Source: Macrostomum lignano (Eukaryota). Taken from it: a stretch of 64,000 bases of DNA. A model generated the notes under the pieces. The model was not told where the DNA came from. It was given only the letters and a program-made list of their open reading frames with translations, and did not search any database. The stretch spans positions 186,001-250,000 of the forward strand of contig NIVC01000319.1 of assembly GCA_002269645.1 (NCBI GenBank), written 5' to 3'. Of this stretch, positions 16,042-22,000 are shown piece after piece (position 1 is the first letter of the stretch; each line of letters starts with the position of its first letter). The translations under genes and the position numbers were made by a program.

Positions 16042-19000
16042 ATGTCGACGGTCTCAGACGCGACTCTCAGCGACGCGGACGATGGAGGTCAGCGGTGGAG
16101 GCTTCAGCAGCCGAGTGCTGGGCTGCAGCGGCTGCTGGGCCTCCTCGAACAGCCCGGGAGAACCGCCGAGCTGCGGGCCGAGCTGCAGGAGGCCACGGCG
16201 GCTGCCGCGTCTGCTGAGGAGCTGGCCAACCTCCTGCTGGTTGCCGACCTTGAAGAGGCGGCCGCTGCCGGTGCGCAAGACTCTGACGCTGATGAGGACA
16301 AAGCGGAGGCTGCACTGGCCGAGGGTTGGCGCGGTAGCCCTCTGCTAGAGACCTGGACGTTTGAGTCCCAGCTAATCCGCGTGAGATGGCTTCCTGCCTG
16401 TGCTGTCTTTCTGTCTGTCTTTCTGTCTGTCTATCTGTCTGTCTCTGTCTGTCTGTCTGTCTGTCTGTCTGTCTGTCTGTCTGTCTGTCTGTCTGTCTGT
16501 CTGTCTGCCTGTCTGTCTGTCTGTCTGTCTGTCTGTCTGTCTGTCTGTCTGTCTGTCTGTCTGTCTGTCTGTCTGTCTGTCTGTCTGTCTGTCTGTCTGT
16601 CTGTCTGTCTGTTTGTCTGTCTGTCTGTTTGTCTGTGTGTCTGTCTGCCTGTCTGTCTGTGTGTCTGTCTGTCTGTCTGTCTGTCTGTCTGTCTGTCTGT
16701 CTGTCTGTCTGTCTGTCTGTCTGTCTGTCTGTCTGTCTGTCTGTCTGTCTGTCTGTCTGTCTGTCTGTCTGTCTGTCTGTCTGTCTGTCTGTCTGTCTGT
16801 CTGTCTGTCTGTCTGCCAGCCCCAACCCCCATCTCTCACCGCAGCTGCCAGGCCAATCTGCAATCGAGGGCTGCACACTGCTGCACGCCGCCGTTGCCAT
16901 TGACAACCACCTGGCTGTGCAGGTCATTGTAGACTGCTGGGGCGACTCCGGCTCCGCACCGCTGAATGCAGTGAGTTCTGAGCTTCTCAGTAGTCAGTCA
17001 ACAAAGTCAAAGCCGTAGAAATTCAATAGCAATATTTGATTTCAAATTCAATCAAATTTTTCTTCTTCAACTCAAAAAAGACAGCCTGAAGCAGAAATTC
17101 CGTTTTAAGGCCGAGACTTTGAAATTTTAAGCCTCTGGGAGCAAATCAGCTGGGCCGGCAGTCAGGAAATCCCCTCCCTGACTTCCCTCTTCATCTCCAA
17201 CCCTCAGGCTGGTGAGACCCCGCTGCACCTGGCCTGTCGCCTTGGCAATCCGTTCCTCGTCCGCCTGCTCACCCAGTGGCGGCCAGGCCAGGTGTCGGCC
17301 AGGGATCGCCATGGCAACTCGCCTGGACACCTGGCGGCCGCGTCCGGAGCCGCCTGCGTTGCTCAGCTGTGCAGTGTCGACGGCGTGAACTGGAGCCTCC
17401 ACAACCTGGTCGGTGCCTGCGGGCTGGGCGGAGGGCATCCGATCGGATTTAGAAAGTACATGGCGCCCTTTGCAGTAGTTTGGGCGCCCCGTTTGGCGCC
17501 GCCTTTGGCGCCCCTGAGGCGGCGCCCCCCCCCTTGACGTCCTTGTTTGTCGCCCCCCTTGGCGCCCATCCCCTTAGCTCCCTTGTTTGGCGCCGCCTTT
17601 GGCGCCCCCTTGCCAGCAGCTTCCTTCTAATTAGTTGTTCATGGCGCGAGCCCATTGGGTGCCAGTTGAGCTTCTGCGGATTCGCTTGCTCCGCTGTCAA
17701 CAAAAAATTGCAGTCCAAGAGATTTTCCGTTTGACTTTTTTAATCCCATCTGAAACTTGCAGAACTCTGTGGCGTCTAGTAACTATGGAAACGGGTTTGT
17801 TGTCCATAGATACGACGCTGGACAGGTGCTTTTATCATCTGAGAAGCTGTAGTCGACGAAATTTAATACCAGCGACGTGACAGTCCATTTTTGTGGAATT
17901 CTTTTATTCTAGTATTGAGATAAGGGTCTTTTGTTGATGTATTATCTTGCTTAGTATTAGCTCAGTGATTTGGGGATAAATTTGGTGATTTGGGGATAAA
18001 CTCAGTAATTTGGGGATAAATTTGGTGATTTGGGGATAAACTCAGTAATTTGGGGATAAATTTGGTGATTTGGGGATAAACTCACTAATTTGGGGATAAA
18101 TTTGGTGATTTGGGGATAAACTCAGTAAATTGGGATTAATTTGGAGACTTAGGGATAAACTCAGTGTTTTTAGGATAATTTTGAAGATTTTTGCATAAAT
18201 TCTGATTTTGGGATGAATTCGTGGAATTTTGGAAAAACACAGCGATCTGGGCATAAATTTTTTGAACAAACTCCGGTCCGCCAGGAGGACAGAACCCCAG
18301 CCGAGATGGCCGACCCCGCCAGCGGAGTCCAGAACCTGATCGCCCAGTACCAGCGGGTGAGCGCTCCGCTGTGCACACTTTACTGAATTTGAACTGTCAA
18401 TAAAAATTTGAGCTCAAAAACGTTCAAATCGCCCTTTATTTTGAAGTCGAGCAGCCTGTTCTACAAGCACCGGCGCATTCAAATCATCGAGTGCTGCAGC
18501 TTCGTTGAGCAGTGAGTTGCCGGCTGTTGCAAGTTTGGAAATATGTTGCAAGCTTTTGAATCTGTTGCAAGATTTTGAATCTGTTGCAAGATTTTGAGTC
18601 TGTTGCAAGATTTTGAAGCTGTTGCAAGATTTTGAATTCGTTGCAAGAGTTTGAATCTGTTGCAAGATTTTGAGTCTGTTGCAAGATTTTGAATCTGTTG
18701 CAAGATTTTGAATCTGTTACAAAATTTTAAATCTGTTGCAATATTTTGAGTCTGTTGCAATATTTTGAATCTGTTGCAAGATTTTGAATCTGTTGCAAGA
18801 TTAGAAATCTGTTGCGAGATTGAAAATCTGTTGCAAGATTGGAAATCTGTTGCAAGATTCTAAATCTGTTATTGAAATTCTGTTGCAAGATTTTGAGTCT
18901 GTTGCAAGTTTGTGTTAATAGATTATAGTTTGCACTCCAAGGCTATAATTTCATTGTAAGATTTAAATCTGTAGACATATTGGAGCTTGTGTTGTGAGAC

Positions 19001-22000
19001 TGCAAAATTAGCACTTTAACAAACTGCGTGCTTTCTTTTCCAGCAACGAGACAGGGCTCTGCTGCTGCGGCAAGGACTTCGACAGCCACATCTACAGGCC
19101 GCTGCCCGCCATCAGCGGGTCGCCGGCCAAGACCCTCGGGTTCGGCGGGGCTCCCTGGAGCCGGGAGACCCACACCATGCCCCTCTGCACCAACGCCTTC
19201 GGCATGCTCAAGTTTTCAGCCTTCTTCTCGTCTCGGGTGAGCACAAGCACCAGGCCTCAGGTCATGAAGCCTGAAGCAAACTAAAACTGAGGTCATGACC
19301 CCAACTGAAACTGAGGTCATGACCCCAACTGAAACAGAGGTCATGACCCAACTGAAACTGAGGTCATGACGCCAACTGAAACTGAGGCCATGACCCCAAC
19401 TGAAACTGAGGCCATGACCCCAACTGAAACTGAGGTCATGACCGCAACTGAAACTGAGGTTGAGGGTGTTGAATGACCCTCCTAACTGATGGCTTTGTTT
19501 TATACTCCGCGCTTTATATCCGTGACATTGCCGTGACCCCAAACCGCTCCCTAATGATCAAAACAGTTCGTCAGAGTCTCCGACTCGGTGGACGACGCCT
19601 CGCTGCGCTGGCTGCTGCAGTCGGTGTGGGGCCTCCGCGTGCCGTCCATGCTGGTGACGGTGCTGGGCGGCCGCGTCACCCGCTCCGACTTCAACAACGT
19701 CTTCATGAAGGGCTTCTGGAAAGCGGCTGGAAGTAACAGTGAGTCAAAATTGTCTGCGTGAGCTACTAGTAGTAGCTTGATGGGAGGTTAGCGTATTTTA
19801 GCGAGTGGGATTCTGGGATCTGAGTGGGATTCTGGGATCTGAGTGGGATTCTGGGATCTGAGTGGGATTCTGGGATCTGAGTGGGATTCTGGGATCTGAG
19901 TAGGGTTCTGGGATCTGAGTGGGATTTTGGGATCTGAGTGGGATTCTGGGATCTGAGTGGGATTCTGGGATCTGAGTGGGATTTTGGGATCTGAGTGGGA
20001 TTCTCGGATCTGAGTGGTATTCTGGGATCTGAGTAGGGTTCTGGGATCTGAGTGGGATTTTGGGATCTGAGTGAGATTCTGGGATCTGAGTGGGATTCTG
20101 GGATCTGATTAGGGTTCTGGGATCTGAGTGGGATTTTGGGATCTGAGTGGGATTCTGGGATCTGAGTGGGATTCTGGGATCTGAGTAGGGTTCTGGGATC
20201 TGAGTGGGATTTTTGGATCTGAGTGAGATTCAGGGATCTGAGTGGGATTCTGGGATCTGAGTGGGATTCTGGGATCTGAGTGGGATTCTGGGATCTGAGT
20301 AGGGTTCTGGGATCTGAGTGGGATTTTGGGAACTGAAAATAGAATTCTGGGATCTGAGTGGGATTCTGGGATCTGAGTGGGATTCTGGGATCTGAGTCGG
20401 ATTCTGGGATCTGAGTGGGATTCTGGGATCTGAGTGGGATTCTGGGATCTGAGTAGGATTCTGGGATCTGATTAGGATTCTGGGATCTGAGTGGGATTCT
20501 CGGATCTGAGTAGGATTCTGGGATCTGATTAGGATTCTGGGATCTGAGTGGGATTCTCGGATCTGAGTGGGATTCTGGGATCTGAGTAGGATTCTGGGAT
20601 CTGAGTGGGATTCTGGGATCTGAGTGGGATTTCAGTCCCTCAGCCGAATTTTCCCTTCGCAGACTCCCTCGTGGTGACTGACGGCATCAGCGAGGGCATT
20701 GTGCGGCTCACGGGAAAGACAGTCCGAGACTACAATGACGCCTACGGACAGAGCAAGATCAACCTGTTGGCCATACTGCCGTGGCACCGGGTGGAGATGC
20801 AGCACCGCCTGCTCAGCCAGGACTTTGCGGTGAGGATGGTGCACACTGAGTGAATCCTTCTGAAGGGCACTCTTCTGTTTGTGTGAATTCTTCTGAAGGT
20901 CACTCTCTGTGTTTGAATCCTTCTGAAGGTCACTCTCTGTGTGTGAATCCTACTGATCGAAGGTCACTCTCTGTGTGTGAATCCTACTGATCGAAGGTCA
21001 CTCTCTGTGTGTGAATCCTTCTGAAGGTCACTCTCTGTTTGTGTGAATCCTTCTGAAGGTCACTCTCTGTTTGTGTGAATCCTTCTGAAGGTCACTCTCT
21101 GTGTGTGTGAATCCTTCTGAAGGTCACTCTCTGTGTGTGTGAATCCTTCTGAAGGTCACTCTCTGTGTGTGTGAATCCTTCTGAAGGTCACTCTCTGTGT
21201 GAATCCTCACTGCAGGGCGCGGTCTGCCCCATGGAGCTGCAGGACGCCGTTTCCACTGTGCTGGACGCCAACCACAACTTCTTCCTGATGGTGGACGTCG
21301 GTCCGCCTGCCGGCCCAGCCGCCTCGGCCGCCATCTCGGCCTCCAGGGCGCTGGCGCTGTCACAATTTCGCTCCCGGGTTGAGTCGCTGCTGTGCCGCTG
21401 GCCGACGGAGATCGGCATCCCGCAGCTGCACCCGCATCTGCCTGCTGACGGGTCTGCGGGGCTGAGCTTAACGTCACCTCCCTTACCTGCTAGTGTCTAC
21501 TCTCAGCCTCTAGTGTCTACTCTCAGCCTCTAGTGTCTACTCTCAGCCTCTTGTGTCTACTCTCAGCCTCTTGTGTCTACTCTCAGCCTCTTGTGTCTAC
21601 TCTCAGCCTCTTGTGTCTACTCTCAGCCTCTAGTGTCTACTCTCAGCCTCTAGTGTCTACTCTCAGCCTCTTGTGTCTACTCTCAGCCTCTTGTGTCTAC
21701 TCTCAGCCTCTTGTGTCTACTCTCAGCCTCTAGTGTCTACTCTCAGCCTCTTGTGTCTACCCTCAGCCTCTTGTGTCTACTCTCAGCCTCTTGTGTCTAC
21801 TCTCAGCCTCTTGTGTCTACTCTCAGCCTCTTGTGTCTACTCTCAGCCTCTTGTGTCTACTCTCAGCCTCTTGTGTCTACTCTCAGCCTATAGTGTCTAC
21901 TCTCAGCCTCTTGTGTCTACTCTCAGCCTCTCGTGTCTACTCTCAGCCTCTAGTGTCTACTCTCAGCCTCTTGTGTCTACTCTCAGCCTATAGTGTCTAC

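Follow-up and report, generated by a model that had tools for sequence, protein, structure and literature searches.

A TRPM2-like channel gene with N-terminal ankyrin repeats from a flatworm, Macrostomum lignano

A predicted 26-exon gene encodes ankyrin repeats ahead of a TRPM2-like channel

In a window of 64,000 nucleotides of Macrostomum lignano DNA (contig NIVC01000319.1, positions 186,001 to 250,000), the locus at 16042–35791 on the + strand is, judged from its sequence, an intact TRPM2-like ion channel gene with ankyrin repeats N-terminal to the melastatin domain. The predicted model comprises 26 exons (all + strand, as are the features below) and 1922 codons; its only stop is the terminal one, and it has no frameshift. 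We are confident that this is one gene for a TRPM2-like ('nudix subclade') cation channel, in which cis-splicing is predicted to link an acidic leader and ankyrin repeats, in frame, with the Cys-rich motif and SLOG/MHR1-4 region of TRPM. The encoded parts follow in the order ankyrin repeats (ANK), Cys-rich motif, SLOG/MHR, six transmembrane (TM) segments, TRP helix, putative coiled coil and NUDT9H.

The first six exons (16042–16380, 16845–16970, 17208–17408, 18285–18356, 18447–18511 and 19044–19236) were borne out as given in the first-pass annotation: all their borders are GT..AG, introns 1–4 are phase 0 and carry exons 1–4 into exon 5, intron 5 is phase 2, and the spliced product is one continuous, stop-free frame of 332 aa. 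Upstream lies an 18-nt tandem array (15635–16008; 20.7 copies), presumed 5′ flank or UTR, which ends 33 nt before the start codon; an in-frame stop at 16009 stands 10 codons 5′ of the ATG. Exon 1 encodes this ATG and an acidic, alanine-rich leader (aa 1–113), whose 3′ end (LLETWTFES) aligns with the motif preceding ANK1 in relatives. Intron 1 (16381–16844; 464 nt) consists almost entirely of (CTGT)n, with ∼105 copies. Ankyrin repeat 1 is encoded by exon 2 (aa 114–155), which matches Schistosoma mekongi exon 2 (phase 0/0), and repeats 2 and 3 by exon 3 (aa 156–222; Pfam Ank_2/Ank_3/Ank), which has phase-0/0 counterparts in two M. lignano paralogs (exon 2 of L001, 207 nt; exon 2 of L002, 258 nt). 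Exon 4 contributes a degenerate fourth (capping) repeat (aa 223–246), with S. mekongi exon 5 (phase 0/0) as its counterpart, and contains an internal in-frame ATG (M230, MADPASG...). The earlier estimate had been about three repeats; there are three clear repeats and one degenerate repeat, and Ank_2 matched aa 126–211 of the exon 1–6 product (E=6.7e-15; 55.9 bits, cut-off 27.3), with Ank_3 and Ank above their own cut-offs at aa 157–178. The TRPM N-terminal Cys-rich region begins in exon 5 (phase 0 to 2; counterpart S. mekongi exon 6, 74 nt, phase 0 to 2) and continues in exon 6 with the CxCG motif and the beginning of MHR1. These two exons had been read as N-terminal TRPM motifs, and indeed they align with the Cys-rich motif of Nematostella TRPM2 from chain residue 41 onward.

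MHR1/SLOG continues through exon 7 (19567–19738; FVRVSDS..LVTVLGG..), whose 172-nt length and phase (0 to 1) are identical in L001, L002 and the S. mekongi gene (L003), and exon 8 (20663–20829; 167 nt), which has the length and phase of S. mekongi exon 9. Exon 9 (21216–21451) covers MHR1/2, exon 10 (22876–23434) MHR2 and MHR3, and exon 11 (23647–23799) MHR3, followed by a 51-nt micro-exon 12 (23906–23956). Exon 13 (24378–24721) encodes MHR3/4 (TRPM2-like domain) with a Q-rich insert, exon 14 (25026–25248) MHR4, exon 15 (25394–25516) the pre-S1 region, and exon 16 (25712–26053) a low-complexity linker and the pre-S1 helix. Several mid-gene borders are uncertain: the donor of exon 9 (GTCTGC), the 3′ border of exon 11 because its proposed donor is GC-AG (GCAAGT), the 3′ border of exon 15, the 5′ border of exon 16, and those of exon 23. 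S1–S4 lie in exon 17 (26432–26857), S5 and the pore helix (YFQTFGE) in exon 18 (28311–28506; 196 nt, phase 0 to 1), and S6 in exon 19 (29682–29811; 130 nt), the last two with the length and phase of L001 exons 14 and 15. Next come the TRP helix (exon 20, 30534–30730), the rib-helix region with a glycine-rich linker (exon 21, 31366–31643) and the putative coiled coil (exon 22, 31727–31932). NUDT9H is spread over exon 23 (32738–32879; N-terminal part), exon 24 (33499–33912; core), exon 25 (34618–34782; expected Nudix box segment) and exon 26 (35543–35791; C-terminus, ending in HGALF and the stop codon).

The first-pass annotation had proposed an ANK-MHR-TM-coiled coil-NUDT9H protein and a Pfam search of this architecture. 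The ankyrin families, LSDAT_euk (SLOG; 83.7 bits), the TRPM2-like domain (116 bits) and Ion_trans (49.3 bits) all fell within a single polypeptide, and the C-terminal NUDT9H matched human NUDT9 (1q33; E=1.2e-12) and the NUDT9H of TRPM2 structures; the coiled coil, which Pfam did not detect, was assigned by eye from the sequence pattern. The nearest solved structure was Nematostella TRPM2 (6co7; 2.4e-87), and in alignment with it the Ca2+-site residues E..Q of S2 and N..D of S3, both in exon 17, are conserved. Pore, S6 and TRP-helix motifs are also kept. The segment of exon 25 where a Nudix box is expected has no REFxEE-type motif. No GenBank protein is at least 90% identical to either the ankyrin or the TRPM part. 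Three M. lignano entries in UniProt contain long runs identical to the window, in agreement with its species.

The ankyrin and TRPM exons are very probably joined across intron 4

The ankyrin–TRPM junction is intron 4 (18357–18446), a phase-0 intron of 90 nt with donor GTGAGC and acceptor TTGAAG. It had been described as having no stop between the last ankyrin and first MHR exons; this is true of the spliced frame only, since the intron holds an in-frame TGA (18384–18386). In paralog L001 a single 252-nt exon equals exons 4, 5 and 6 of the window gene, and in L002 a single 203-nt exon ending in phase 2 equals exons 4 and 5; therefore, the sequences that flank intron 4 are fused in one exon in both M. 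lignano paralogs, which lack the intron. S. mekongi has a phase-0 intron at the matching position; its ANK4 exon (phase 0/0) is followed by one of 74 nt (phase 0 to 2) and then by exons of 166, 172 and 167 nt. Exons 4–8 of the window gene (72, 65, 193, 172 and 167 nt) match this series in order and phase, which argues that intron 4 is an old cis intron. Consistent with the reading of ankyrin and TRPM exons as one gene, then, paralog exons and S. mekongi intron phases agree, and the join is very likely real on these sequence comparisons.

The main rival posits two genes, either as an operon or as the outcome of a recent fission: exons 1–4 would form a stand-alone 255-aa ankyrin protein ending at the intron 4 TGA and polyadenylated after an AATAAA at 18399, while the TRPM mRNA would arise by spliced leader (SL) trans-splicing at 18446/18447 and start at the leader's terminal ATG. 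In M. lignano, SL trans-splicing affects about 30% of genes and operons contain 15%, at intergenic distances that peak near 100 bp, and the leader does end in ATG (PMC8629364). As exon 5 begins in phase 0, such a leader would also supply an in-frame start. Read-through of the exon-4 donor gives VSAPLCTLY and then the stop, and the AATAAA, 12 nt past the TGA, is the only one on the + strand within 16000–19300. However, the exon-4 donor is a phase-compatible consensus GTGAG, the acceptor TTGAAG lies outside the reported trans-splice motif [T/C]TNCAG, and short AT-rich introns (69–113 nt) whose acceptors are not CAG are a normal feature of RNA-backed paralogs. Among 10 comparable short introns at three loci, 2 have a poly(A)-like hexamer (window intron 4 and L002 intron 10). 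Weakened further by the continuous exon in two RNA-derived paralogs and by the matching intron within one annotated gene of S. mekongi, the operon is very improbable.

A milder variant, in which one gene yields several products, is unlikely, if less so. Alongside the full ankyrin–TRPM mRNA, an ankyrin-less channel could start at M230 in exon 4 or arise from trans-splicing at exon 4/5, and retention of intron 4 with polyadenylation might give a short ankyrin-only product. The internal ATG and the stop and AATAAA within intron 4 would permit this, and because introns 1–4 are all phase 0, an SL-donated ATG would be in frame at any of their acceptors; yet nothing in the sequence requires it, and the annotated models of relatives are all of the fused form only. 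It is also improbable, although less so than the operon, that the locus is a silent or decaying duplicate, an unexpressed copy in the recently polyploid M. lignano with its many TRPM paralogs, in which the fused frame is a relic. The window copy has no RNA-derived GenBank model, whereas paralogs do, and minisatellites load its introns, among them a 38-nt array duplicating the donor of exon 17. Against decay stand the uninterrupted 1922 codons, the conserved Ca2+-site, pore, S6 and TRP-helix motifs, and divergence from the closest paralog group (P0015, P0001) to about 45–63% identity over aligned regions with key motifs kept.

The window gene as a member of a flatworm subfamily

Returning to a single fused gene, we found relatives in GenBank and UniProt. 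Five annotated flatworm proteins carry Ank_2 above the Pfam cut-off N-terminal to LSDAT_euk, TRPM2 and Ion_trans: PAA85706 and PAA68780 of M. lignano, and the trematode proteins KAG5447154 (Clonorchis sinensis), XP_009171463 (Opisthorchis viverrini) and KAK4474030 (S. mekongi). The M. lignano entries are BOX15_Mlig models, which were built from RNA-seq transcripts that had been split where SL and poly(A) sites mapped (PMC5730564). The N-terminus of the window protein aligned colinearly with all five, and because the ankyrin segment is homologous to and colinear with these N-termini, the ankyrin–TRPM match is far beyond chance. A phylogeny was built by neighbour-joining from a single alignment (37 sequences, 429 columns). 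ANK+SLOG proteins formed one clade (99% bootstrap), adjoining ankyrin-less flatworm TRPMs that include praziquantel-target-like (PZQ-like) sequences, and flatworm SLOG TRPMs as a whole had 91% support.

The suggestion of a possibly undescribed subtype was not supported in so far as the architecture is already present in database proteins of M. lignano, Clonorchis, Opisthorchis and S. mekongi, and so is common, for flatworms, among annotated TRPMs. No description of it was found in searchable texts. Given the same layout in annotated flatworm proteins, the window gene adds to a flatworm channel subfamily that is catalogued but uncharacterised and has been overlooked, and is not an isolated chimera. 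Its ankyrin repeats contradict the published generalisation that TRPM channels lack them (PMC7306681).

The ankyrin module was probably joined to a TRPM2-like channel that was complete by then, prior to the split between Macrostomorpha and parasitic flatworms. By homology, the protein would be a tetrameric, Ca2+-dependent, non-selective cation channel, with SLOG/MHR1-2 as the likely nucleotide (ADP-ribose-type) sensor and a NUDT9H that is probably non-catalytic, since it lacks a recognisable Nudix box. The mechano-gating role once proposed for the ankyrin segment found no support: three clear repeats and one degenerate one are unlike the long TRPN spring. The short ankyrin domain would lie peripherally on the cytosolic ring and act as a protein-interaction or regulatory module, not as a mechanical spring.

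Comparison with known TRP channels

The paralogs BOX15_Mlig003066 (PAA85706, 1781 aa) and BOX15_Mlig025325 (PAA68780, 1889 aa) share the domain order of the window protein (Ank_2, LSDAT_euk, TRPM2-like, Ion_trans, NUDT9H motif), its clade (99% bootstrap), and intron positions and phases, e.g. the 172-, 196- and 130-nt exons. In contrast, they are only 39–44% identical to it and have neither intron 1 nor intron 4; intron 5 and the CxCG motif are missing as well from Mlig003066. The three trematode 'TRPM2' proteins likewise combine ANK, SLOG, TRPM2 and Ion_trans, with an ankyrin module homologous to that of the window protein. Those of Clonorchis and S. mekongi have a precomputed NUDT9_N match, and the exons flanking the junction agree in order and phase between S. 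mekongi and the window gene. The trematode proteins differ in gene span (90–125 kb against 20 kb), in identity (Clonorchis and S. japonicum cluster representatives are 32–33% identical to query P0011) and, in S. mekongi, in having ANK2 and ANK3 on separate exons where the window gene has both on exon 3.

The window protein resembles Nematostella, human and zebrafish TRPM2 (PDB 6co7, 6mix, 6drj) in its N-terminal Cys-rich motif, SLOG/MHR1-4, six TM segments bearing the Ca2+-site residues, TRP helix and a NUDT9H at the C-terminus, but no Nudix box is recognisable in it. Compared with these structures, it has 246 residues upstream of the Cys-rich region, including the ankyrin repeats; in the alignment with 6co7 that motif begins near chain residue 41, too close to the N-terminus to accommodate such repeats, and human and zebrafish TRPM2 are not known to have any.

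Schistosome TRPM_PZQ (Smp_246790), the praziquantel target, is a flatworm TRPM with SLOG and NUDT9H (PMC11731825). PZQ-like sequences form a sister clade within the flatworm SLOG TRPMs, separate from the ANK+SLOG clade (99% support); they have much longer cytosolic inserts than the window protein, and those in our set did not match a custom profile of the flatworm ankyrin module. Conversely, schistosome TRPM_MCLZ (Smp_333650) combines a TRPM-like pore domain with ankyrin repeats at the N-terminus (PMC11731825, PMC12861061), as do, by Pfam, the M. lignano ANK-only proteins Mlig019746, Mlig012389 and Mlig020550. These four lack the SLOG/MHR1-2 and NUDT9H that the window protein has, and fall in a distant, separate clade (100% support).

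TRPA1, TRPN/NOMPC, TRPV and TRPC resemble the window protein in placing canonical TPLH-type ankyrin repeats N-terminal to a six-TM TRP channel, although its TM region matched TRPM channels only among the PDB matches listed. TRPA1 has about 14–18 repeats, NOMPC 29, TRPV 6 and TRPC 4, compared with 3–4 here, and to our knowledge none of these families has a SLOG domain or NUDT9H.

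Gene structure of the locus

All six exons proposed by the first-pass annotation (16042-16380, 16845-16970, 17208-17408, 18285-18356, 18447-18511 and 19044-19236) were borne out. Every border in this set has GT..AG, introns 1-4 are in phase 0 and intron 5 in phase 2, and the spliced exons form an open frame of 332 codons, with an in-frame stop 10 codons 5′ of the ATG. To build the whole-gene model, open segments in six frames were combined with tblastn searches using relatives and with splice sites that keep the frame. It comprises 26 exons on the + strand (16042-35791), with a CDS of 5769 nt and 1922 codons in which the sole stop is terminal; several mid-gene borders are uncertain, namely the exon 9 donor, a GC-AG intron proposed after exon 11, and exons 15, 16 and 23. 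At 23800-23905, after exon 11, the conserved ..LDLY.. motif of that exon can be kept in frame only via a GC-AG intron with donor GCAAGT, the alternative being a shorter exon that ends at a weak GT donor.

Public protein sets hold this gene as broken fragments only. UniProt A0A1I8F6T5 and two other entries of the older M. lignano annotation (together P0011-P0013) carry long exon-identical stretches broken up by frameshifted junk; the identity places the window in Macrostomum lignano, which is a free-living flatworm. These WormBase-ParaSite/UniProt models mix correct exons with read-through in the wrong frame; two of them carry the names 'Pecanex-like protein' and 'ANK_REP_REGION domain-containing protein', neither of which suits the listed sequence. 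At the locus itself the gain is modest, namely a full and correct gene model for a paralog that is publicly annotated only as frameshifted fragments.

The ankyrin-TRPM junction

The ankyrin and TRPM exons very probably belong to a single gene. It had been noted earlier that no stop separates the last ankyrin exon from the first MHR exon. This holds for the spliced frame, but the intervening intron 4 (18357-18446, 90 nt) itself has an in-frame TGA. This bears on a different arrangement, an operon or gene fission in which a separate ankyrin gene is followed by a TRPM gene started by spliced-leader (SL) trans-splicing. In M. lignano, ∼30% of genes undergo SL trans-splicing and 15% are members of operons, where the spacing is close to 100 bp, and the spliced leader has an ATG at its end (PMC8629364). 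Read-through of the exon 4 donor would add nine codons before the stop at 18384, and an AATAAA at 18399, 12 nt past the TGA, is the only one on the + strand in 16000-19300. Exon 5 also starts in phase 0, so an ATG donated by the leader would be in frame.

The exon structures of relatives, compared by exact mapping of three proteins onto their genomic loci, argue against two genes. The M. lignano paralog Mlig003066 has one 252-nt phase-0/0 exon that spans window exons 4, 5 and 6 and lies directly after the exon matching window exon 3, and in Mlig025325 a single exon of 203 nt with a phase-2 end spans window exons 4 and 5. Therefore, the sequence flanking window intron 4 is contiguous coding sequence in two transcript-backed paralogs. 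Such BOX15_Mlig models derive from assembled RNA-seq transcripts, for which mapped trans-splice and poly(A) sites served as explicit cutting points (PMC5730564), and by extension from these RNA-seq-derived models one mRNA is predicted to span the ankyrin and TRPM exons. In S. mekongi, the ANK4 exon (138 nt, phase 0/0) is followed by exons of 74 nt (phase 0 to 2), 166, 172 and 167 nt. Window exons 4-8 (72, 65, 193, 172 and 167 nt) correspond to S. mekongi exons 5-9 in order and phase, with two of the five equal in length (172 and 167 nt), and the intron positions differ by at most one aligned residue across the junction. This mirrored order, phase and position indicates that intron 4 is an old intron, removed by cis-splicing, in a gene that was already fused. 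Judged from these alignments, it was kept by the window copy and lost in the two other M. lignano paralogs. The two paralogs had pointed to a lineage-specific intron, an idea that we rejected because the S. mekongi gene shows the intron to be ancestral. In the RNA-backed paralogs, short AT-rich introns (69-113 nt) ending in, for example, GAAG or CAAG are normal, and poly(A)-like hexamers occur in 2 of 10 short introns from the three loci. Based on the exon-structure comparisons with both paralogs and S. mekongi, we consider separate ankyrin and TRPM genes highly improbable. Alternative products from the same locus are possible, if rather unlikely.

Domain content of the predicted protein

The predicted N-terminal ankyrin repeats were confirmed by Pfam, with Ank_2 on residues 126-211 (E=6.7e-15, 55.9 bits; cut-off 27.3) and both Ank_3 and Ank above cut-off on residues 157-178. 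The domain consists of three clear repeats and one degenerate capping repeat, behind an acidic leader.

For the channel body, Pfam domains were searched in a rough version of the 26-exon model. The SLOG/MHR1-2 region is present (LSDAT_euk, 83.7 bits, cut-off 25.7, aa 332-474) and aligns to MHR1/2 of Nematostella TRPM2 (6co7), as are MHR3/4 (TRPM2-like domain PF25508, 116 bits, cut-off 27, aa 702-947 of the rough model) and a six-TM domain with TRP helix (Ion_trans, 49.3 bits). The S2 E..Q and S3 N..D residues are conserved, since LIEEAKQ and GWNLMD align to ILIEEIRQ and TWNFVD of 6co7; we take these residues to be the Ca2+ site, following TRPM2/4 structures. The pore reads YFQTFGE, and the TRP box is a variant, YWTLQR, compared with the usual WKFQR. 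Exon 22 encodes a helical, heptad-like stretch, read from the sequence pattern and conserved in the paralogs; Pfam TRPM_tetra had no match in the rough model product. Ahead of MHR1 lies the N-terminal Cys-rich motif (ECxxF ... CxCG), which aligns to srrECirFvpkshdvsrCkCGrprerH of 6co7 and is a described TRPM feature (PMC13143021). In the TRP helix (exon 20, 30534-30730), a position that is E in the M. lignano paralogs (REY/REF) is D in the window protein; the praziquantel 'gatekeeper' is an acidic residue (PMC9910428).

At the C-terminus, the NUDT9H domain recognised in the first pass was recovered: a phmmer search of PDB sequences with the last 283 residues finds human NUDT9 (1q33, E=1.2e-12), as well as the NUDT9H domain of TRPM2 from human, Nematostella and a choanoflagellate (1e-10). 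Pfam NUDIX gave no match in the rough model product. The alignment to NUDT9 is interrupted precisely over the segment of the Nudix box (GX5EX7REUXEEXGU), and the corresponding window segment has no REFxEE-type motif. This combination suggests that the NUDT9H domain is probably degenerate and not catalytic.

By homology to TRPM2, the protein would form a tetrameric, Ca2+-dependent, non-selective cation channel, with the SLOG/MHR1-2 domain as a probable nucleotide-binding element. On the most economical reading, the ankyrin domain would be a peripheral protein-interaction or regulatory module attached at the bottom of the cytosolic ring.

Relatives and phylogenetic placement

An exhaustive HMMER search with the fragment P0011 as query against 1.84 billion representative proteins, with matches identified by cluster look-up, returned full-length flatworm proteins among its matches. 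Searching with the whole N-terminus yielded mostly generic ankyrin proteins and one TRPM match, and the search was repeated without the ankyrin part. In all five of the flatworm proteins PAA85706 (Mlig003066), PAA68780 (Mlig025325), Clonorchis KAG5447154, Opisthorchis XP_009171463 and S. mekongi KAK4474030, Ank_2 was above cut-off, and it lies N-terminal to LSDAT_euk, TRPM2 and Ion_trans (Pfam). The chimeric ankyrin-TRPM architecture put forward in the first-pass annotation is real, in what is very probably one gene, but it is not unique: five annotated flatworm proteins share the order Ank_2, LSDAT_euk, TRPM2 and Ion_trans.

A neighbour-joining tree was calculated for 37 sequences, with 200 bootstraps, over 429 columns of good alignment that span MHR4 through the TRP helix. 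Proteins with ankyrin, SLOG and NUDT9H domains formed one clade (99% bootstrap), made up of trematode proteins and three groups from M. lignano, among them the window gene. Its sister clade (99%) consists of ankyrin-less flatworm TRPMs and includes praziquantel-target-like sequences; flatworm SLOG TRPMs taken together had 91% bootstrap. Ankyrin-only proteins that lack SLOG, which are of the meclonazepam-target type and include several M. lignano genes, formed a separate, distant clade (100% bootstrap). A profile of the flatworm ankyrin module recovers all members of the ANK+SLOG clade at 1e-42 to 1e-47, and in the alignment the module and the Cys-rich/SLOG region are colinear across these members. 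The tree placement makes a single gain of the ankyrin module most likely, by a complete TRPM2-like channel inside the flatworm TRPMs and before the Macrostomorpha/Neodermata split.

TRPM-like genes of the meclonazepam-target type, ankyrin-only and without SLOG, fall into at least three groups in M. lignano (P0123, P0073, P0116/P0185 and P0150, from M. lignano and one Logan contig), several of them with more than one copy.

Tandem repeats and neighbouring sequence

Nearly each long intron of the TRPM gene (16381-35542) has its own high-copy minisatellite, with a unit that differs between introns: 19 nt x43 (19803-20631), 20 nt x62 (21493-22734), 16 nt x57 (28711-29618) and 16 nt x38 (34847-35454). 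No minisatellites were found in the short introns of the gene (83-145 nt). Intron 1 (16381-16844) is almost wholly (CTGT)n, about 105 copies at 16394-16815, with donor GTGAGA and acceptor CCGCAG; there is no intron at this position in two M. lignano paralogs, and S. mekongi has a phase-0 intron nearby. At 26835-27204, a 38-nt unit repeated 9.7 times comprises the final 22 nt of exon 17 (..VVMIQTM) and its GTGAGC donor. This array results in about ten tandem copies of the exon 17 donor, and the UniProt model P0012 reads through several of them. Upstream of the gene, 20.7 copies of an 18-nt unit (GCTCTGAGTTCCCCTGCG, 97% matches) are arrayed in tandem at 15635-16008; the array stops 33 nt 5′ of the start codon and occupies the expected position of the promoter or 5′ UTR.

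An open frame of 379 aa on the - strand (28597-29736), antisense in intron 18, coincides with the 16-nt minisatellite there. It gave only a sub-threshold, low-complexity Pfam match (Cornifin, 24.5 bits; cut-off 34.8) and is most likely a repeat artefact and not a gene. A T-box transcription factor gene lies 3′ of the channel gene on the + strand (about 44900-48300), with a Pfam T-box match at 46848-47165 (E=6.9e-32) and the domain end at about 48180-48230. The final 2 kb (62001-64000) has a GC content of 0.29, compared with about 0.5 in the rest of the window.

Discussion

TRPM has been stated to be the TRP family without ankyrin repeats (PMC7306681). With Ank_2, Ank_3 and Ank all above cut-off, the window protein departs from the literature's trait of 'no canonical N-terminal ankyrin repeats', and absence of these repeats is a descriptive generalisation about TRPM rather than a defining structural requirement. 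A 2026 survey of TRPM domain gain and loss does not name flatworms in its main text, and it contains no N-terminal ankyrin gain (PMC13143021). Two more undeorphanised schistosome TRPMs have been placed in a 'nudix subclade', in a review whose text is silent on ankyrin with SLOG (PMC11731825). The combination is discussed in none of the texts searched, and is possibly drawn in a figure. It is, however, catalogued in sequence databases, and the locus is a correctly modelled new member of an unstudied flatworm TRPM subfamily. The gene and its relatives indicate that a complete TRPM2-like channel gained a canonical N-terminal ankyrin module early in flatworms and has retained it since. This is relevant to the evolution of TRP domain architectures, and also to the schistosome TRPMs that have been listed as 'orphan' drug-target proposals (PMC11731825).

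Our broader proposal is tentative, and we hold it somewhat doubtful: that channels with ankyrin, SLOG and NUDT9H domains may constitute a distinct, flatworm-wide and never-analysed TRPM subfamily, ancient in that Macrostomum and trematodes share it, in which the ankyrin domain gives a mode of regulation or anchoring absent from studied TRPMs. If so, the subfamily, as sister to the praziquantel target, would add a candidate to the drug targets in parasitic flatworms and be a natural test case for the effect of an added ankyrin domain on a melastatin channel. Since M. lignano can be made transgenic, it would offer a practical system for probing the role of the module.

Among solved structures, Nematostella TRPM2 (6co7, E=2.4e-87) is the best match to the channel body, and the Cys-rich motif is conserved between the two. 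Another flatworm TRPM with ankyrin sequence is TRPM_MCLZ, in which ankyrin-like modules stand in place of SLOG and the enzyme domain is absent (PMC11731825, PMC12861061). As an account of a 'TRPM with ankyrin' at this locus it was rejected, because that type lacks SLOG and NUDT9H; in contrast, the window protein has LSDAT_euk and NUDT9H, and falls outside the ankyrin-only clade. The first-pass annotation had also suggested a mechano-gating module, for which we find no basis in three clear repeats and one degenerate one joined to a TRPM-type pore domain. In TRPN/NOMPC, an ankyrin spring of about 29 repeats tethers the channel. Unlike TRPN/NOMPC, the window protein has no long ankyrin spring and its pore domain is of the TRPM type; with so few repeats, its ankyrin domain is too short for a NOMPC-like spring.
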